Below are positions 36-45,723 of a stretch of 62,005 nt of DNA, one piece after another. The DNA is from Chara braunii (taxonomy: Eukaryota; Plantae; Charophyceae): contig BFEA01000002.1 in the NCBI GenBank assembly GCA_003427395.1, positions 2,449,022 through 2,511,026 of the forward strand. Reading direction: 5' to 3'. Under the pieces are notes generated by a model. The model searched no databases. It worked only from the letters and a program-made list of their open reading frames with translations, and had not been told where the DNA came from. Position 1 is the stretch's first letter; each line of letters opens with the position of its first letter. A program made the position numbers and the translations under genes.

Positions 36-1299
36 CCAAGTGGGGCAAAGCTTCTAGTGGTTGCAAAGTTGCAAACAGTTCCTCCTCTAGACTATTTATT
101 GAAAAAGAAAAAAAGAGCCACTGCTACTTGCTACTTCTTTAAAGTTTTTATTGCTTTTTTTTTATAGGGAAACTTTGGCACAGAGATGGCGTGATGGTAA
201 GAACATTCTCGTTGAGTGGGCCTTTTGTGAAGGCTCCATCTATTGGTGGGGAACAACACCTGCTGGAAAGTGGGTCCAGCGTCCCAGATTACAACACGAG
301 AGCCTGTATTGATTGATAGATACTCGACGGGCAGCATTGATTGCCCGCCATTAGGAGGGGATGGCTACCCGCCAGACCTCAGAGAATGGACGTACAAGCA
401 CGTTACAGCATTTACCCACTTTATGTAAGGCATCTGCCAGCTCCCACCACGTGGAAAACTCCGATGCACGAAACCCCAAGAGACGTGGTGAGAAAGAATA
501 TCTGCCCTCCTCAGGTCTAGTCAAGTGAAAGGGGACGAACCTAATTCGCGAAAAAGCCAAAGCAATAGCCGCCACCTCTCCCTCCGAATTTATACTGTTG
601 TGTTAGGACTACTGTTGCTGTTTATTTCCAGTTTGGCTTCTGTTTTGTAACTGGGACGCTGGACCCGATTTCCTAATGGTGCTGCTCCCCACTAACAAAT
701 TGAAGCCATTTAAAACACAGCCTACTATTGGATAGGCTTCTTTTTATGTTTACTGTAACAGTTTTCTTTTCATAGGCAAACACAAAGTCCATCTTTTAGC
801 CTACAAGTTCACATTCGTGGCCATGGGCCAGGCACAGCACCCGTCGCTGCGAATTTTTTTTTTCTTTTTTTTTTTTCTTACTCACTGTGTTCTTCTCGCA
901 AATTCTTTTTTGCGTTTCAGTTCCTCCCTACCACTACTACTAAAGCTATGTAGAGGGGACCCCTGCAAGCATATCCGGGTAAGGCCCTCAGAGAGCGCAT
1001 AGTCACACTTGTACTTTCCAGACTGCTTGTGGCCACTTTTAGGGGAGCATGATTGTAGTGCCCTGGCAGAGAGGCAAGGCGTTATCCATGGGGGTTTAGC
1101 AACACCCTCGCTGTGGGCATACTCACACTAATACTGGAGTCCCGTGTTGACCACTATCACAGCATAAGGGATGTTTTTTTTTTTTTTTTTTGTGCTTCTG
1201 TTGTGTCTCTGCAGACACCATGCTGAGGGCACAATCACACTAGCACTTCATAGAATGTATGTGACAGCTATCACGGCTTTAGGGATGCTTTGTTTTTTT

Positions 1300-2200
1300 T
1301 TTCTTCTTCTCGTTTTTTTTCTTTCTTCTTCTTTTTCTTTTTTTTAACACGGGGGTCCAGTGCCCAAGGCTCAAATTAACAGTTGAATACGACTCAAACA
1401 CACGCCTCTCCCCATTAGGGCAGGAAGAGCCTCAGCCACTGCTCCCGTAGAGACAGCTTCCCTATACAACGAGAATAGAACATGGGCAGTGAGCATTGAT
1501 TGCTTCCCCTGGAAGGAAGGATCAACCCAGCCCCGTAGACAATGGAATTCTGCCCTACTAGCAGTACCAGAAAAGAACAACGAAATTGTGGCCTGCAAAC
1601 ACTAGGTTTGGAAAAAATCGGCGCACAAGGAAATTCAGAATCTGCAAAAAGAGGCTCGGAGGTGGTGGTGGTGGTTTAAACCACAATGCACACAGCCCCA
1701 GCCTTGCAGTCCGAAACTTGTTGCCACAAGAAAACGAGGCCGGCACGTCAAAGGCTGGGCCCGCCGTTGATAAATTTGACTGGCGGGGGCCTGTTTTTGT
1801 TTCGCGCCTCCAGAATTTGAGGTGTCAGACCCGTGGCCCAGGTGCCCATGTACTGGTGGTTTAAGAAGACTTCTGTTGCTGCTATTGAAGCAGCTGTTGA
1901 TAACTGGTATCCACAGCAGTGTACTTGTATGAGTACGTTGAGTACCGCTGCTAGCCATGCTAGCCATGCGTGGTCCCCACCTTCCTCTTCCCCCCTGTTC
2001 ACCTCTCCCCTCACCTCGAAAGCAGCCCCTCCAACCCCTATGTAATGGCAGGTTAATAGGATTGGATTCTTGCCATAACTGATTGGTTAACCCCGAAAGC
2101 TACCCTGCCATGCTGCCTGCCAGTGATGGTAAAAGGTAATTCCTAACTGTATTAAAAAAAAAGGGCAAAAAAAACAGTACAGTATGGGTGATGGGGTATG
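1300..2200 (-). mobile_element. Degenerate 3' portion of a LINE (zf-RVT-like C-terminus)
   Basis: Minus-strand translation ...RFLVATSFGLQGWGCVHCG... continues after a frameshift as an EPLFAD segment, resembling the CxxC...HLF motif of L1 ORF2. A-rich tails (T-runs on +) lie downstream. Confidence 0.35.
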
Positions 2201-2249
2201 CTGCGGCTAGAGTGGTGAATCATTTTGATTATGACTTTTGAGGGGGTAA

Positions 2250-3700
2250 AAGAGTGGTGGATCATGGTTTGTGATACGCAACCTCACACCCTGTGCAGTG
2301 TCCCGTACTCGTGAGATCACCGATCAGAGTAAATGGGGCGTGGTCGAGGATTTTGGGCGTGGGCTTGAACCGCCAGGGCGAAGTTGGGGTTCTCGGGGTT
2401 CTCGCCTCAGATCTGAGGGTCTTTCAGGAAACACTGGCCAACAGGGACAATTTCAAAATTGCAAAACTTAGATGACGAAGAGGGGCAGGATATCCGAAAA
2501 ACCCTGCCACTCGACTTAGGGGCAAATGTGCAAAACCCAATCCTACCGGAAAATTAAGTGCAAAAGCTCCACAACAAGAAACGAATCTAGTGCCTGCTTG
2601 ACGCCAGGTTCACAACGCTCTTTCCGTGGGGGCCAAGGAGAAAAGGGACACTTTACGCATCCGAATAGGGCCAATGAAACCTGTCGGATTGAATTGCAAA
2701 ACTTAGACGACGAAGAGGGGCAGGACATCCGAAAAACTCGCTCCACAACAGGAAACGAATCTAGCGCCTACTTGACGTGAGGTTCACGGCGCCCTTTCCG
2801 TGGGGGCCAAGGAGAAAAGGGACACTTCACGCATCCAAATAGGGCCAATGAAACCCGTCAAGTTGAGCCAAATCCTTGTCATCCAATGGGGGTGAGAGCA
2901 GAGGTTACCATCACTCCCGCATTAGGGGAGAGATTCAAGAACCGTAGGGACAATTTCAAAATTGCAAAACCTAGATGACGAAGAGGGGCAGGACATCCGA
3001 AAAACCCTGCTGCTAGACTTAGGTGCAAATGCGCAAAACCCAATCCTACCGGAAAATTAAATGCAAAAAGCTCCACAACAAGAAACGAATCTAGTGCCTA
3101 CTTGACGCCAGGTTCACGACGCCCTTTCCGTGGGGGCCAAGGAGGACAGGGACACTTCTCGCATCCGACTAGGGCCAGCGAACCCATCGGATCGACCCAA
3201 ATTCTCGTCATCTGATGGGGGTGAGAGCAGAGGCACCCAGGTCCTGAAGTTTGCTGGAAGCACTCCCGCATTAGGGGAGAGATTCAAGAACCGTATGGAC
3301 CCCTTGTACCTTTGCAACACCCTCCGCCAGGAACAGGAGCTTCCGAGCCAGCACCAACGACAGTTAAACTGGGGCTTCCACGTGGCGCGTGCTGCAGACC
3401 AGGGGCGCATGGTTAAATCAGCATATGGCAAAATCAATGATGGGGAAGCAAACCAATCGATCAACAGAAATCCAACTCCCCCTATATGACACCCGTTAGA
3501 CGAGTTGTAGAAGTGAATGCGATTGGTCCGCAATAGTGCCCTTCGCACATCCGCGGTGCAGTAACGATCGTCTTCGTCTGCAACCGGGAAAGGAGGAAGG
3601 CTGCTATGGCGGATCGATGTAAAAGGTTTGAGCACGGGCAATTACCCATGCTCACACTCAAGTTCGCAAACCTCAACACCATATAATTCTCAACTTGTCC
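2250..3700 (-). repeat. Internally duplicated decayed coding-like repeat, homologous to 18930-19700
   Basis: Block GGACAATTTCAAAATTGCAAAAC.TAGATGACGAAGAGGGGCAGGA recurs at ~2445, ~2690 (partial) and ~2948. A diverged copy lies at ~19140. Confidence 0.7.
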
Positions 3701-20734: not shown

Positions 20735-21711
20735 TGGTCTTCAGCTCATCCCGCATCGCCTGGTCTGCCTCCAGAGGCCACCAACACAGGTGAGCCCTTT
20801 CAACTTTGCTCAACACTCAATCATTAGTGAAAAGTTCAGCAAAGGAACACAGTCGTGTTAGAAACATAGTGGGAGAGAAACTCCAATAACCATAGTAGAA
20901 GTATAGTTACTCATAGCAAAACAGGAACAGGCGACGCCTGGTTGGGTCCCAGAGGTCTGTGTTTTCGGCAGCCACAATACCGAGGTCTGTAGAACAACAG
21001 CCTTATTGGTGGGGCCACACACGTACCGAATCCGAAATTCAACAGTAACTGCCCACTGTTTATGACGACCGGTCGCTTCATTTTCTCAATCGTGACACTG
21101 ACCTTAAGGGGCGAACGACATGGTTTGAAAGAAAGACAACAATGCGAAACCTCAAGGAACTGCAGTACCTAGGATACAACGGCAACAACGGTGTCGGGGC
21201 AAAAACCTTGACAAGGGTATTTGCCGGGGTTTTTCAACGTCAGACACTGTCTGATCTTTTCGTTGAATTGAAGGACTTGATGAGACTGACGTTTGCTAAA
21301 CGTTTATTCAGACCTGACCTATGACTGAGAAACTAAGAATTTTTAGACTTTAGTCCGGACGCGTGTGACGTCCAGAGGTATCGGATGTGAACGACAAGGC
21401 TATGCTTTTGTCGAAGCCGCAGAAAAGTGCGGATAAAGAAATGCTAAAATTAAACCTATCCTACCTATAAACAGCCGCGCGATTCAGGGCCCAAGTAGGC
21501 TCGAAGAGGCTGGCCGCGGCACAGTCAGGATGAGCCGCCCGATTGAATGGGCTGCAGTGTGTGTGTTGCAAGACCAGGAGGCCGCCGTACCGATAGCGGC
21601 GCAGCCGGCTTTGGGAGAGGAGGCCGACAAGGCCTGCCTATGGCCGTGGCTGGGTAGTCTGCTGGGCTGCTACCCTTCATATAGAAGGGTAGCATGCTTA
21701 GCTTCCATGAA

Positions 21712-21785
21712 AAGGAGTTAGCCCAGTAGGTTACCATGCCAAACTGTCACCCAACTGATACCGGGATCGAGCCTGAAATGATTCG
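21712..21785 (+). pseudogene. tRNA-Asp-derived sequence (SINE-like head)
   Basis: A-box-like TAGCCCAGTAGG, Asp anticodon loop CTGTCAC (21744-21750), B-box-like GGATCGAGCC, and T5 at ~21804. Stems are decayed. Confidence 0.5.
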
Positions 21786-21886
21786 CCTACTGGTGCTAGC
21801 CCCTTTTTGGAGCAGATCAGTGTACCCGAGCGCGGTCAATTTCAACCGCGAGATCGTCATGATCGCGCGGCCGAAATCGGCCACGC

Positions 21887-21951
21887 AGATTAGCATGGCC
21901 CCTGCGCAAGGATGACACGTACAAATCGAGGAACGGCCCAATTTTTTTTTT
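21887..21951 (+). pseudogene. U6: 3' half of U6 snRNA (5'-truncated, lacks ACAGAGA box)
   Basis: AGATTAGCATGGCCCCTGCGCAAGGATGACACGTACAAATCGAGGAACGGCCCAATTTT closely matches plant U6. Confidence 0.93.
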
Positions 21952-21959
21952 CGATTCCC

Positions 21960-22032
21960 CGAAGGGCCGAAGGGAATTGAACTCGGGTCTGTATTTCAAC
22001 AAGACCCCTGCCGTTGGCATAAGCCAATGGCC
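21960..22032 (-). pseudogene. tRNA-like relic
   Basis: Minus strand has GACCCGAGTTCAATTCCC (T-arm/B-box) with an upstream TGGCTTATGCC. Isotype not assignable. Confidence 0.35.
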
Positions 22033-22309
22033 TTAATATGGTTGTGCCAGATGACGTCCAGGAAGAGACACCTGAGGACTGTAGTCCTCAGCAAGTTTCA
22101 GAGGGCGCCCGTTTTCAACGGGCAGCCGTTTTTTATCCCAGGTAAGGTGGTTTCGTTTTTCTGTTTTTTTTTTTTTTTTTTTAGATTCTTAGATTTTCCT
22201 TTTAGATTTTTTCCTAGATTTAGTTTAGATTTTTTTTTTTTTTTGTCTTTTTTTGTCTTTTAGTTAGGGCACCCATTCGTTCGAATGACCAGGGCGAAGC
22301 ATGACTGCG

Positions 22310-22368
22310 CCAGACTGTTTCGACGGACTCACACCGATTCATCAGCAGGTTGAACCTCGACGGTCTGG
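22310..22368 (-). ncRNA. Type III hammerhead ribozyme (partly decayed)
   Basis: Minus strand: CCAGACC-GTC^-GAGG TTCAA CCTG-CTGATGA-ATCGG TGTGAGT CCGTC-GAAA-CAGTCTGG. Core boxes intact, stems I-III recognisable with mismatches. Confidence 0.85.
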
Positions 22369-22465
22369 GCAACGGTTGAGCGATAAAGCGCCTGAACCTA
22401 GCGCTTATGGTGCCTAGGTACAGGCACATAGTAGAAGATACAGGGAGGGCGGAAAAGACTGTGCA

Positions 22466-22520
22466 AGGCTGTTTCGTCGGACTTTCACTGACTCATAAGG
22501 GGGTTGCACCCCGACAATCT
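22466..22520 (-). ncRNA. Type III hammerhead ribozyme (core mutated to CTTATGA)
   Basis: Minus strand: AGATT-GTC^-GGGG TGCAA CCCC-CTTATGA-GTCAG TGAAAGT CCGAC-GAAA-CAGCCT. Confidence 0.85.
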
Positions 22521-22777
22521 GGGGTAGGTAGAGCAAAAACGAATGAATCTCCCGCCAGAACGCGGAAGAATACATCCGCCTCATGCAGTGGCCAAACCAT
22601 TGCTGCTGCTGCGGCCGCTGAGGTAAGTTTTTATTTTTCTTTTTCTCTTCTTTTTTTTTATTCATTTTGTTCCTTCTTTTTCGTGCGTTGCTGTTGAATC
22701 ACGATCAACATGGTAAAACGGAAAGGGCAAAAACGAATCATTAAAAACTGTAAAAAAAAAAAAAAAAAAAAAAAAAA

Positions 22778-22887
22778 NNNNNNNNNNNNNNNNNNNNNNN
22801 NNNNNNNNNNNNNNNNNNNNNNNNNNNNNNNNNNNNNNNNNNNNNNNNNNNNNNNNNNNNNNNNNNNNNNNNNNNNNNNNNNNNNNN
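22778..22887. other. Assembly gap flanked by poly(A); other gaps at 32405-32439, 34289 and 40665-40729
   Basis: N runs in the sequence. Confidence 1.
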
Positions 22888-23062
22888 AAAAAAAAAAAAA
22901 AAAGGAAGAAACAAAACAGAAACGAGGCAACTGCCTCGTAGGGGGGAAAACGAAGAACAGTCCTTCGGACTGTGTGGGAGCACAAAGGCTTCCACTCCGT
23001 TTTTGACCAAACTACTGTGGCCGCGAGATGTTGAATCTCGCGGCCCACAGTACAAGCATGGA

Positions 23063-23064
<2 letters not shown>

Positions 23065-23152
<88 letters not shown>
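23065..23152. repeat. (GA)n microsatellite; others at ~28868, ~34566, ~52255, ~55040 and ~60185
   Basis: Seen directly. Confidence 0.98.
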
Positions 23153-23155
<3 letters not shown>

Positions 23156-24094
23156 CGTGGGAGCTGGGAGGGGGAGGTCCTACTCCTCACATCCTGCCAA
23201 CTGCCTTCCTGTTATCAGGGTAGGACAGCAAAGAAAAAGGAAGGGGGTTGTTGCATGCAACAACATGCACCTGGCCAAGGTAAAAGCCAGGTGCAGTAAA
23301 AATTAGGAAGTTAGTTTTGCTTTCTTTTCTTTTCTTTATTTTGTGTGAGGACACTTGTCCTCACGTGGTGCTACCTCTGGCAGAAGCTGCCAGAGGTAAC
23401 TGTTTGGCTCCCGTTTTTGAAGGGAGCCTGGAAATTGAAGAGCCACTAAGGAAAAGGCTAAGTGCAGCCTTTTCCCCAATGTATCTGCCCTGGAAAAAGG
23501 GTCCGGATACATCGAACTGAAAAGGGTTGTATCTTTTCAACCCTTTATCAGAAAAATAAAAGAAAAACAGATTTGGAAATGGCAGGAGCCCAGCTATCTC
23601 GCCAGATTCCGAGATAGAAAGAAAAATAAAATAAGGGCACTTGAAGAAACTGCCCCACACTAAAGTTGTGGCTGTGGTGCGGCCACAGTCAGCCTTAGAT
23701 CCTGGCAGATCAAGGGTTCACAGTGAGCCCACGATTTTGCCTAGGGGCCGGAGTGACGTCCAACCCTCCTCAGCCAATATAAAATAGGCAGCTGCCCCCC
23801 AGCTGCCACACAATGCACTCGTGTTGCCAGTGTGTGACGAACACACTTGAGTGCTGCTAGCTGCTGGAGCTGCAGCCTGAGGCAACGTGAGGAGGAAGCT
23901 GGAGACCTGCAGAGGAGCGCAAGGAGGAGTTGGGCAGCCATAGCCAAGGCAGGGAGCACTCTGCTCCCCTCCCCTCTGGCTGGTGCTGGTCCCACGGGAC
24001 AGACCCAGGGACACTGCGGGACTACGGCAGTGCGGCTAAGTGGAATTTTGGCCTGGAGCCCAAATTTTATTAATTTTGGCCTGCCATTTTCTCA

Positions 24095-30430: not shown

Positions 30431-31604
30431 ACCCGTGTCTGACCAAGTGGTAGCCGAGTCAGGCCCCCGGGGCCCAACGTCGGTCTCGGAACCGGTCACT
30501 TGGTCATAAAACAGCCGTAAAGGTAAGGGGACTAGGGGCCGCGCATCCCGCTGGCCTGTGACGCCGCGTCCCGCTAGGCTGCGCGTGGTTGCGCCTTGCC
30601 GTCGATACCCCACGTGCGCCGCTCACTTGGGCGAGGATCTAAACTTCCTCCTGCGAGTGTGCCGTCAACTCTAGTCAAGGCCGCACCGACGTGACCTACA
30701 AAAAACACGCCAAATACCTTTGTAAGGGTACTTGGTACGACACCGGTACCTTACCTTTTTTGGGACTGGTACCTACCTTACCCATTTTGTGAAGCATCTC
30801 ACCCATCCATCCCATTTTCCAGCAATTTTTTCAATACCTAGTTAAAAAATGGGTCTGGAAACCCACGTCGTTGTAGCTTCATTTTCAGAGCGAGTAAAAA
30901 TGTGCCTCACCGCCAGGCAGAGTGCCCATGTCATAAGGGACATTTTTGGTGTCTCGCATTGAAAGTGCTACAGGGTCTTGGCTTACCACTCACCAACTTG
31001 ACAACAAGTGTGAAAAATGGAATGCATAATAGAGAATGTATCATCGGGTAGAACATGTAAAGGTACATCTTCTGCCATAGTTTTTACTTTTTGCGCATTT
31101 AGTGCGTAGTGCAAAGACGTCCATAGTTCTATGCATTAGTCAAGCCTTCTGAGGAAATATTAACACTAGGCCTTTCTAAACTCAGCTCAGGACATGATTG
31201 TGGTCAAATGCATCCAGGTGCAACCGTGATTAGATACATATAGAAAAATGTTAGTGTCAATTTGTGCCGGGTGGAGTATTCAATACTACATGTACCGAGA
31301 AAGGTGCCATGGACAGTTGGTGCTTCAACTAGTGTTCAGAAGAGTCCGGAGATGAATCGAGGACTTCTGACTCAAGACCTACTGACACCGGCACGCAAAA
31401 TTGCAAATTTTGCATTGGTTATTCTGCGCTTATGGGGAACCACCTGGTCACACAACTCTCCCATATCTAGCACAAAATAGAAAAGACACAACTGCGACTA
31501 GTCCTTCAAATCAGAATTTACGCCCCGTGCACTCACGTGGTGCAAGGCACAAATGTTTAATGGTGAATGAAGAGAGAAATCACAAGAAATATATATATAT
31601 ATAT

Positions 31605-31721
31605 AGGGTTCAGCCTCCTGATGAGTCAGTGAAACTCCGACGAAACAGTTTGTCACAGCCCCTCGTTTGTTGTCCTCTTCTCTCTCTCTGCCTACGGTTT
31701 ACCGGACAGTTCTGTTTGTGA

Positions 31722-31723
<2 letters not shown>
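31605..31723 (+). ncRNA. Hammerhead-bearing short insertion in a (TA)n tract, 5'-truncated at the cleavage site
   Basis: AGGG TTCAG CCTC-CTGATGA-GTCAG TGAAACT CCGAC-GAAA-CAG. The 5' arm of stem III and the GUC triplet are absent, replaced by (TA)n. Confidence 0.85.
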
Positions 31724-31758: not shown

Positions 31759-32553
31759 GGGTCACCAGCCCGTACGTACGGAGGTCCCCGGGGAGGCCTC
31801 CGTACGTACGGGCGTTAGGGGTCCCATACGGGGTCCGAACCCGACGGCGTTCGGCCCCCGCTGAAAATTATTTCGAGGCCTAAAAATAATTATTTTTTTT
31901 TAATTGTTTTTTTGTGAGTTCTCTATGACGTGAGGTACATGCCTGTAAATGTTCAAGTCATTTGGCTAAGCCAAATAAAAATTAAAAATCGCCAAAGATG
32001 GCGGTGTCAAAACGTGCTCGCCCACGTATTTTTTCACTTTTTACTTTATGTTCTCACTTTAGTTCGGGGTCTAAACAATTTTTTTATTTTTTGAATTTTT
32101 TTTAGTGGGTTTTGTATTATGTGAAGTACACATCTGTAAATTTTCAGGGCATTTAGCTATGCCAAAAAGAAATAAAAAATCGCCAAAAATGGCGGTGTCG
32201 AAAACATGCTCGCGCACTCACTAAATTTTTAATTCTCTTTTTATTTTTATTTATTTTTATTATTAGTATTTATTTTCCGTATTTTATTTTTATTTCAAAT
32301 TTGGTAAGGAATTAGGATGTAATGCTCAGGCAAATCTTGTTTAATTTATTTTTCTCCATAACATTTTTTTTTTTTTTAGATTTGTTTTGATGATTTTTTT
32401 TTTTNNNNNNNNNNNNNNNNNNNNNNNNNNNNNNNNNNNTTTTTTTTTTTTTTTTTTTTTTTTTTGGTCTGAGGCCGGCCCGAACGGCCGAACGCATCCC
32501 CAAGGGTCCCATACGTTCGGGCGTTCGGCCCGTCCCGAACGCCGGTTATCCTG
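31757..32553. mobile_element. hAT-type MITE inserted in a (TA)n tract
   Basis: TIRs CAGGGTCACC / GGTTATCCTG. 8-bp TSD TATATATG on both sides. Subterminal CCGAAC/CGTACG repeats. Confidence 0.88.
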
Positions 32554-42895: not shown

Positions 42896-45723
42896 GTCGG
42901 TGCGAATACCCTTACAAGGGTATCCGCCCTGGTTTTTGCACGCGACAAAAAATAAGTTGGTTTAAGGTTTAAGTATATCGCGTCAGGCGCGGCTGCGTCT
43001 GTGATTTATGTCGACGGGGTGGTTAACTAGAATAGAGAATGTGTGGGCGCGCGGATTTGAGGCGCGCGTGATCCTTTTAATTGTTGATGATTGGAGGGCC
43101 GGCGTGATCGCCGACCGAATTTTTTCTGATTAAATAGGGATTAAAAAGGATTATGTCTTGCTGATTGATATGCCCACCGTGGCCTGCGCGTACGTGCGGA
43201 GGACGGCATCGACAACAAAGTGACTTCTGAAGGCGTCTTGGTAGCTTGGCGCGTCGCGCAGTGTCTGTTTATTTGGGCGTCCGCCAGCGCTAGACCTAGA
43301 CTTGGGCCTAACACTATTTGGTATGGCGTCAAACTTTCATCAGGGAGATTCAAGGATCGAGGTCGAGCGAGCGACGACGCAGGGATCAGAGTGGCACGAA
43401 TGGACCGAGGGGTTGAGGGCCTGGCGGGGCCATCCCCCTTGGTTTTGTCGTCGGCGGCATCCGGTCGGCGGTGGTGTTTTCTAGGTAAGTTCTTTTTAGC
43501 GTCGTATTTTTATTTAAATGACTACTATGCTCCGACGTGCCGATTGACCCGGGCACGGCACCGGCTTTTAAGAGCCGTCGGCGGGAGCACCAGTCAAGGA
43601 CTTGGGCTCGCGCCTCGTTTGACGGTTCGATCGGGTTTCGGCATGTTTGGGATGCTGGCAAAATTCCTCTATCCCACCCATTTTGGAATGCGGGCCGAGG
43701 AGTTCAACGTGCATGCAAGCCGGTGGGTGATTAGCCTACGAGGCGGGAGAAAACCGAGTGGCGGGGCCCCTTTTGTGGGTGCCTCGGCCGCAGCCCACGA
43801 TCTGTGTGTGGGAGGTTTGAGTGTGAGTATGCTCGTTGGGCCCTGGCGGGAGGGCGAGTTATCCCTGAGCGGGGCGACTCGGGCCATGGTGGGGCCGGCA
43901 ACAATGTTGGCTGTGCGCAGGTAGCTCATGGTGAACCCCTCCGCTACGGCCTTCAAAGTTCTCATATGAATAAATTTGCTACTACCACCAAGATCTGCGT
44001 CAGGGCCTGCTGCACTTGGGACCACGCTACGGGCCTGCGGCAGGTGTGTTCCGCCGACACCACGACCACTGTCGGTGTGTGAGCTGCCCATAGGAGGCCT
44101 CAGAGGGTAGTAAGCTCTGCCTGAGCGGAGCGGACCGGAGAGGCTGCAGTGGAGGCCGCAGCGGTATGGACGTGCATACCGTTCGTCGGGCTTGGGTACA
44201 GGGGCGAAAGACTACCGTCAAGTAGCCGTTTTTCGTTGCTCGACCTATGGGACCGAGAGCTGCGGCAGGGGGCATTTGGGCAAGGCACACAGTGCCGCTG
44301 CTGCGTGCAGCGTTCGTCGGACTTGGGTATAGGGGCGGAAGACTAATCGAGTCGTCTAGTAGCTGGCTCCCTCTGAAGTTCCCCTCCGTCGGACTTGGGC
44401 ATAGAGCCGAAAGGCTGATCGAATGGGAGAGACCCAGCCCCCTCCGAAATTTCCCTTACCGCTGCTCTAAAGGGCCGAGCAAGGAGGAAACTACAGCGGC
44501 CGACGGGTAGCAGCAGAGAGGAGTCGGAGAGTGGCAGGAAGGGGATGAATCAGGGCGCATTTTCGCGCCGGGTTCATTCGGAGAAAGAAACAGGCAGGTA
44601 GGAGCAAGGCATGATGGAGCGCTCTGCACGACGAGTGGTAGGCAACAGGAAGGAGGGGGGGGGCGAACGAATCGGGACGAGATCCGGAGCTGGGTGCAGG
44701 GGAGAGAACGGGGGGCCGACGGGCAGAACGCTACAGCGGCCGACGGGCAGCAACAGGGAGGAGTTGGGAAATGGTAGAGGGAATGAATCCGGGCACGTTT
44801 TCACGCCGGATCCATTCGAAGAACGAAACTATGGAGAAAATGTAGCGAACGAGGGAGGAAGTAAATAGCTCGCCCGATTCTTGACAGAATCGGGTGCAGA
44901 AAGACACTAAGTAGAGGGTTTTTATGGTTGCGAGTTGAATGGGGAAGTTAGAATTGGCATTAAATTAGTAAAATAAAGGCTGTTAGAGAAAGTTAGTGCG
45001 CGGGGAGGATGGCGGAGGTAGCTATAGAGGGAACAGATCTCGCGCGTTTGTGAGCGGAATCGGCTAGAAGAAGAACTGAAGTAGGGGTTTTGGAATGGGG
45101 CGACCTCATTGGTGAAGTCGGAATGGAGAAAGGACTAGTAGCAGATGAGGGGGAGAACAGAATTGGTGCGCGGCTATGGTAAAAGGCATGAGCATGGCGA
45201 TGGGGAAGAGATGGCTTACGCCCGCTCCTCGACGAAAACGGGCAGTCGAAGGTCTGTTTTCGAGGTTTTGGGCAGGGGCGAAACTGTTAGTCCAGTCAGA
45301 AAGGGCGAGGAGTACGTAGAAAAGAAGTTAGAAGTTAAAGGGGGTGCGTGAAGGTGCAGGGCAGATGGGCATTGTGGCGCAGAAAGGTAGAGGACTCGCC
45401 AGATTCTCGACGAGAACGGGCGGACGAAGCTTTGGTTTCGGGGCTTTCTTACCGTACGAGTGGATCTGCGGATTCCGCAGTAGAGTTGAGATTCTTGGTG
45501 CGAGGCGATTCTTGGGATACGTCGAAGGGGAAGGAAGACTGGGACAACAATGTATCTTCCCAGTTGCTAGCGGAAGATTCATCTGACTTTGCTTATCCTA
45601 GCAGCGGAAGGGGTGTGAAGTTAACTGCGGGGTTGGAGACTTACCGTGTGACCGCTATGCTGCTCATCCTATTTACGGTAGTACATGATTGCAGTTGTAT
45701 AGCCGGGCACTTGCCTATCAACA
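42896..45723 (-). mobile_element. Solo-LTR-like element carrying LSU rRNA-derived segments (copy B)
   Basis: Termini TGTCGGT...ATCAACA. Inverted homologue of 24501-30742. Confidence 0.7.
43640..44460. pseudogene. Rearranged LSU rRNA-derived segments, with an inversion and a triplication
   Basis: Sense LSU (GGATGCTGGC...GGAGTTCAAC...GAGTGTGAGTATGC...CCTGAGCGGGGCGA) at 43650-43880. Antisense GGCCTTCAAAGTTCTCAT...TTTGCTACTACCACCAAGATCTGC at ~43948-43998. CTTGGGTATAGGGGCGAAAGACTAATCGA-like motif three times (~44191, ~44322, ~44394). Confidence 0.92.

Follow-up and report, generated by a model that had tools for sequence, protein, structure and literature searches.

Two adjacent, decayed type III hammerhead ribozymes in Chara braunii, probably separate copies of an abundant non-coding hammerhead retroposon

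The window analyzed here, a 62,005-nucleotide stretch of the Chara braunii genome, contains two relics of type III hammerhead ribozymes on the minus strand (HH1 and HH2), spaced by 154 nt. The hammerhead family is real, and HH1 and HH2 are decayed members of it. We conclude that the locus probably represents two adjacent, separately decayed copies of a short non-coding hammerhead retroposon, which lie head-to-tail and belong to a family that was probably driven by a Penelope-like element. Taken alone, the pair is a dead fossil. It adds one data point for a very abundant hammerhead retroposon family in a close algal relative of the land plants.

The GTC triplets (GUC in the RNA) of HH1 and HH2 were located at 22515-22513 and 22361-22359, respectively. 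Downstream of each triplet, a closed stem I precedes a CUGAUGA-type box; a closed stem II, GAAAC and the stem III partner come next. The alignment to the Rfam model spanned model positions 1-54 in both copies, consistent with type III topology, in which loops close stems I and II and stem III is open. The initial annotation of this DNA had described two minus-strand type III hammerheads in head-to-tail order, and this was borne out by the sequence and by the Rfam scores. Its details of stem I were also correct, namely GGGG/CCCC in HH1 and GAGG/CCUG in HH2, where the outer G.G is unpaired. The two hammerheads, and a third copy found elsewhere in the window, are as follows:

22466-22520, minus strand: HH1, a decayed type III hammerhead, predicted cleavage after C22513 (Rfam RF00008 Hammerhead_3, 36.3 bits, E = 7.5e-6 in a 1.3-kb scan)
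22312-22366, minus strand: HH2, a decayed type III hammerhead, predicted cleavage after C22359 (Rfam RF00008 Hammerhead_3, 28.3 bits, E = 9.5e-5 for an 86-nt stretch scanned alone)
31593-31655, plus strand: third hammerhead copy, within an element from about 31606 to 31723 that has (TA)n on both sides (Rfam, 21.6 bits)

When HH1 and HH2 were compared without gaps at an offset of 154, the similarity extended over 67 nt (78%); when gaps were allowed, it extended over 114 nt (72%). Similarity had also been claimed for about 30 nt downstream of each hammerhead. This was true of the first 10-20 nt or so past stem III, and beyond that point the identity fell to the random level. The DNA contigs of both samples examined matched the locus without a difference (22262-22640 in one, 22262-22441 plus 22412-22640 in the other), and the pair is therefore not an assembly artefact.

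All three copies scored below the curated Rfam gathering score for Hammerhead_3 (48.5 bits), and they are visible only at relaxed thresholds. A scan of the whole window at the gathering threshold returned a U6 fragment as its sole match and no hammerhead. Further, a covariance model of the family, run with filters off over every position of the window, found no relics beyond its three source copies. The low scores of HH1 and HH2 would suit chance look-alikes. However, three co-linear copies lie within 62 kb, the repeat depth of the core is huge, and the majority sequence of that repeat is a perfect hammerhead, as described below. The chance reading, to which we assign practically no probability, is already refuted.

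The decay of the two copies was assessed by a pair-by-pair check, which agreed with the earlier remark that both are mutated. In HH1 the core reads CUUAUGA, with U in place of G5, and three stem pairs are broken. In HH2 the core boxes are intact (CUGAUGA, GAAA and the NUH triplet are all present), and stem II is broken beside the core, with A.C at 10.1-11.1 and U.U at 10.2-11.2. Further mismatches of HH2 are G.G in stem I and C.A in stem III. Because U replaces the essential G5 in HH1, and because HH2 lacks the G10.1-C11.1 pair plus three other pairs, both copies should be inactive according to established hammerhead biochemistry. The minimum-energy folds of HH1, HH2 and the third copy were not hammerhead-shaped in any case, and their z-scores were not significant.

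Public Chara braunii data, comprising the DNA contig sets of two samples and two oligo-dT RNA runs, were mapped on 22190-22640 at 80% likeness. Because the RNA libraries had been selected for poly(A) and only 6% and 12% of them were read, small circles could have escaped detection. The runs gave 328 and 870 reads, all of which were confined to the two hammerhead cores. None of these reads was at least 99% alike to the locus, and essentially all ran on into unlike sequence. The RNA depth over the spacer (22366-22445) and over the flanks was zero in the two oligo-dT runs, and neither a circular back-joint nor a pile-up of ends was detected in them at the 6% and 12% read. Other members of the family are transcribed or lie inside transcripts, and the locus at 22310-22520 is silent. 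The presence of two hammerheads in the right order would be compatible with a miniature retrozyme that still functions and gives rise to a 154-nt circular RNA at present. Against this stand the replaced G5 of HH1, the missing G10.1-C11.1 pair and three further mismatches of HH2, minimum-energy structures that are not the hammerhead fold in either copy, and two partly read oligo-dT runs that contain no read at or above 99% likeness, no read from the spacer and no joint. We regard such present-day activity as extremely unlikely, and this reading is close to refuted.

The mapped contigs showed how abundant the family is. The summed contig depth over the hammerhead cores was approximately 7.9e4 and 1.3e5 in the two samples, compared with 9-14 for the contigs of the locus itself. 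The core of about 60 nt is present at roughly 10^4 times the single-copy depth in DNA contigs, where depth is a rough proxy of copy number. The majority letters of the mapped sequences differed from the HH1 region at 22465, 22468, 22489, 22497, 22501 and 22507, and from the HH2 region at 22308, 22323, 22330, 22331, 22338 and 22346. These letters repair both copies. In HH1, the change at 22497 brings back G5 and thereby CUGAUGA, that at 22489 closes stem II as GUCGG/CCGAC, those at 22468 and 22465 close stem III, and stem I is adjusted by those at 22501 and 22507. In HH2, G10.1 is regained at 22338 and the adjoining U-A pair at 22323, the change at 22346 closes stem I, and 22330 and 22331 yield the family loop UGAAAGU.

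With changes at these places only, the number of differences between the 67-mers of HH1 and HH2 fell from 16 to 4. The corrected HH1 had an intact core and all 19 hammerhead pairs, and its hammerhead fold (-22.1 kcal/mol) was close to the minimum (-22.8 kcal/mol). Thus, 12 of the 16 differences between HH1 and HH2 are private decay, about six in each copy, and there are no common derived changes. Since the majority letters restore the core and all 19 pairs, the master sequence of the family, as read from these letters, is a canonical type III hammerhead.

We also scanned metagenome and viral collections for the family core. Both collections contained the same two marine phage-like contigs of 21.5 and 19.1 kb (L001/L002; L003/L004), which gave the only matches; no algal copies were found in either collection. 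Each contig carries an intergenic type III hammerhead. That at L001 8190-8244 (minus strand) scored 53.6 bits, above the Rfam threshold, and the site on the second contig is L002 3461-3489 (plus strand). The 29-nt catalytic core, stem II included, is an exact match to the pattern of the algal family. However, the phage hammerhead lies between phage genes, its stems I and III differ, and no flanking sequence is held in common. Because stems I and III and the flanks differ, this hammerhead is, on sequence comparison, an independent ribozyme and not a relative of the element. The match indicates that a bona fide hammerhead uses the majority core of the family.

The initial annotation had taken the 154-nt spacing to be the monomer of a miniature retrozyme. 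This claim was not supported by the comparison of the two units, which have only about 100 of the 154 nt in common. When the units were compared at fixed offsets, identity was high, at offsets of 151-154, only between approximately 22556 and 22455. Both the final stretch of the would-be unit (some 50 nt) and all sequence upstream of 22556 showed random identity, so the period is not continued upstream of HH1. Local alignments evaluated against shuffled sequences revealed no significant similarity between the 3' regions of the two copies. The far leader did not resemble the 3' regions, and there is therefore no third partial unit. Nor did the repeat possess the boundaries of an LTR. Contigs from other loci run across its upstream edge, and there is thus no LTR-like boundary at 22556. 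A search of 22260-22640 for a tRNA-Met type primer binding site (PBS), allowing up to 3 mismatches, gave no match. The 41-nt centre was not purine-rich, and a polypurine tract (PPT) was therefore not recognized there.

Further, the 154-nt RNA was neither unusually structured nor rod-like (z = -1.17). The contigs from other loci indicate that the leader of the upstream copy, about 110 nt long, belongs to its element; a 154-nt circle would not accommodate a leader of this length. Hammerhead spacings of 62 and 68 nt were found in other head-to-tail pairs of the genome. The downstream member of those pairs begins within the ribozyme, immediately behind either a tail of 16-31 nt or a (CA)n run that belongs to the upstream member, and the sequence between the copies is (CA)n or a T-rich tail.

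These observations bear on two further explanations of the pair. A local tandem duplication of 154 bp, acting on a single inserted copy, would account for the exact head-to-tail order and for the gap-free register across the hammerhead. However, all 154 nt should then match equally. In fact, identity is random over about 50 nt, and HH1 and HH2 have no common derived change relative to the family majority. We consider a local duplication very unlikely.

Alternatively, a real unit of about 154 nt could exist, a short non-LTR type III retrozyme, of which the locus would be an old retroposed dimer or 1.x-mer, inserted from multimeric or circular RNA and since decayed. The two hammerheads lie in head-to-tail order on the same strand, both units possess the same minor type of leader, HH1 and HH2 are about equally far from the family majority, and steps in depth occur near 22573 and 22429, reported as 154 nt apart. 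Insertion of a dimeric RNA would likewise result in equal decay without common derived changes, and faster decay or small rearrangements could explain why the 50 nt match poorly. The dissimilarity of that third of the unit and the lack of a continued period upstream of 22556 nevertheless argue against a dimer, as do the contigs from other loci that carry the leader past the wrap point of a 154-nt unit, the spacings of 62 and 68 nt in other pairs, the ordinary structure of the 154-nt RNA and the lack of a back-joint in the two partly read oligo-dT runs. We therefore regard the old dimer as possible, although unlikely.

A wider form of this proposal, in which the subfamily would be a genuine type III non-LTR retrozyme of about 150 nt that is moved by a Chlamys-type Penelope-like element (PLE) and cycles via small circular RNAs, with the present locus as a fossil dimer, appears to us quite unlikely. 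If true, a type III non-LTR retrozyme of this size would link the plant retrozymes (type III, LTR) and the animal retrozymes (type I, Penelope-derived).

We favor two adjacent, separately decayed copies. The upstream copy would extend from about 22632 to 22430 and possess a long leader; the downstream copy would extend from about 22429 to 22266, possess a shorter leader and be followed by an A-rich tract. The shorter leader of the downstream copy would then give rise to the 154-nt spacing. Apart from HH1 and HH2, the parts of the two elements are as follows:

22521-22632, minus strand: leader of the upstream copy, a moderately repeated module (contig depth, contig pieces)
22430-22465, minus strand: 3' region of the upstream copy, comprising the stem III partner and a short tail
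22367-22429, minus strand: shorter leader of the downstream copy (local alignment, contig depth)
22266-22311, minus strand: 3' region of the downstream copy, in which the similarity to the abundant family stops near 22297 (loose ends, depth)
22164-22265, minus strand: A-rich low-complexity tract directly behind the pair

The summed contig depth of the upstream leader was 1000-3500 over 22526-22573 and 70-300 further out, and reached the single-copy level near 22632. Contigs from other loci, with 10-15 differences, extended from 22531 or 22546 to 22621 or 22632 and thereby crossed 22556; one other contig joins the leader stretch 22546-22621 to a hammerhead core. The 3' region of the upstream copy was at single-copy depth beyond about 22446 and was not alignable to its equivalent in the downstream copy. 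The downstream leader resembles the upstream one over the 35-40 nt that adjoin the hammerhead. The local alignment of the two leaders covered 31 nt and was equalled by 48 of 2000 shuffles. The depth of the downstream leader was 100-400, and one contig spans 22296-22417 with 12 differences.

A relative of the leader module was observed at 45550-45600 (plus strand), with a weak similarity of about 75% over 52 nt and no recognizable hammerhead behind it. The leader may be a separate module, or the copy at 45550-45600 may have decayed beyond recognition.

The A-rich tract at 22164-22265 may be a tail or the insertion target. The A-rich flanks at 22621-22675 and 22139-22201 (minus strand) can be aligned along some 55-60 nt and share CTTACCT as their final letters. 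We evaluated these flanks as a target-site duplication or a repeated tail and rejected them, because the alignment score of 25 was equalled by 105 of 1000 shuffles and is not significant. A tRNA scan of 21000-23400 detected no tRNA. The surroundings of the pair contain two other features. The 3' part of a U6 snRNA lies at 21885-21947 (plus strand; 51.2 bits), approximately 220 nt from the A-rich tract; it lacks the first 45 model positions, which include the 5' stem-loop and the ACAGAGA box, is followed by a T-run and is probably a 5'-truncated U6 pseudogene. About 150 nt upstream of the element, a run of N (22778-22887) marks an assembly gap that is bordered by a long A run on one side and a long T run on the other, and the context there is uncertain.

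The third copy indicates how such elements may be inserted. Its element sequence begins at about 31606, 1-2 nt past the predicted cleavage site, its core is intact, and it lacks both the GUC and the 5' strand of stem III. This arrangement fits a hammerhead-cut RNA that would have been copied into a microsatellite. Further, many reads and contigs of the family join (CA)n a few bases into stem I. A GC-rich, near-perfect palindrome with CCGTACGTACGG arms was observed at 31764-31811, directly after the (TA)n that ends the third copy.

In the scheme that we infer for self-cleavage, for the order of insertion and for the mobilizing enzyme, a transcript of the family would be cut at GUC by an intact type III hammerhead, and the cleavage site would consequently become the 5' end of some copies, of which the third copy in (TA)n is an example. 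Low-complexity or microsatellite DNA would then receive a copy of the RNA, frequently at a site immediately behind a resident copy. Insertion beside a resident copy would generate head-to-tail pairs of variable spacing. Counting against our preferred explanation of two separate copies, the pair lies in A-rich DNA and not in (CA)n or (TA)n. The five longest open reading frames of the window (at least 200 aa) had no Pfam match, and a reverse transcriptase or other partner was therefore not recognized among them. The copies would be either dedicated short non-autonomous elements or 5'-truncated tails of autonomous elements.

In plant LTR retrozymes, the LTRs measure about 350 bp, and a PBS, a PPT and target duplications of 4 bp are present. 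The locus resembles them (Cervera et al., 2016; PMC4918200) in that a type III hammerhead lies in direct repeats that flank a non-coding centre. However, the repeats here are about 100 nt long, the centre is about 40-50 nt, and it contains no PBS-like motif. Further, other copies run across the would-be LTR edge at 22556. Thus, defined LTR ends, a PBS and a polypurine tract were not found at the locus, which differs in these respects from a plant LTR retrozyme. The circles of plant retrozymes are given as 600-1000 nt in the abstract of a 2017 review. Combined with a plant/viroid type of ribozyme (type III), the Penelope-like-looking style of insertion bears on the origin of hammerheads in plant retrozymes and viroid-like RNAs.

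Metazoan non-LTR retrozymes possess type I hammerheads, form regular tandem arrays of units of about 170-400 nt and produce abundant circular RNAs. They resemble the present copies in being short non-coding units with one hammerhead each, arranged head-to-tail, and are thought to be derived from pseudo-LTRs of PLEs (Cervera and de la Pena, 2020, PMC7229834; 10.64898/2026.07.22.740005); such a derivation of the animal elements is described in the preprint of Li et al. (2026). In contrast, the local hammerhead is type III, only about 100 nt are common to the units, and no circle was seen in the oligo-dT runs. The locus therefore lacks both the regular units, similar over their whole length, and the type I hammerhead of non-LTR (tandem) retrozymes.

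The closest correspondence is with PLEs. According to Craig et al. (2021; PMC8557442), Chara braunii harbors Chlamys and PLE-X elements in very high copy number; Chlamys-2_cBra possesses a canonical hammerhead at its 3' end, and the hammerheads of the PLE-X families are likewise canonical. The same study reported that insertions strongly favor (CA)n and (C)n, that partial tandems occur and that insertion ends carry extra tails of 30-40 bp. Tandem hammerhead copies in algae were also mentioned by De la Pena and Cervera (PMC5680766). The combination of features at this locus had initially been presented as unusual for an alga, and the two reports weaken that novelty. By description, the present copies resemble Chlamys-2_cBra and PLE-X in the hammerhead near the 3' end, the very high copy number, the insertion into simple repeats, the partial head-to-tail arrangements and the short unrelated tails between units. 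The locus itself, its family and the third copy display the corresponding features of a Penelope-like tail or derivative: (TA)n surrounds the third copy, reads of the family run into (CA)n, and, within an A-rich tract, an unrelated stretch of about 40-50 nt separates the two units. The local copies differ in that no reverse transcriptase or gag-like open reading frame adjoins them; the type of hammerhead is not stated in PMC8557442, and the local copies are type III.

A Penelope-like insertion is probable, because canonical hammerheads were described in 2021 for PLEs of Chara braunii. Since the features described by Craig et al. (2021) match those seen at these copies, the likeliest driver would be a Penelope-like reverse transcriptase of the Chlamys or PLE-X type. 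The assignment of the family to the retrozyme or Penelope-like kind, which had been proposed initially, was right. Much of this has already been published for the autonomous elements (Craig et al., 2021; PMC8557442). The locus is real but ordinary for this genome, and, as judged by comparison of its layout, it fits the published description of Penelope-like insertions.
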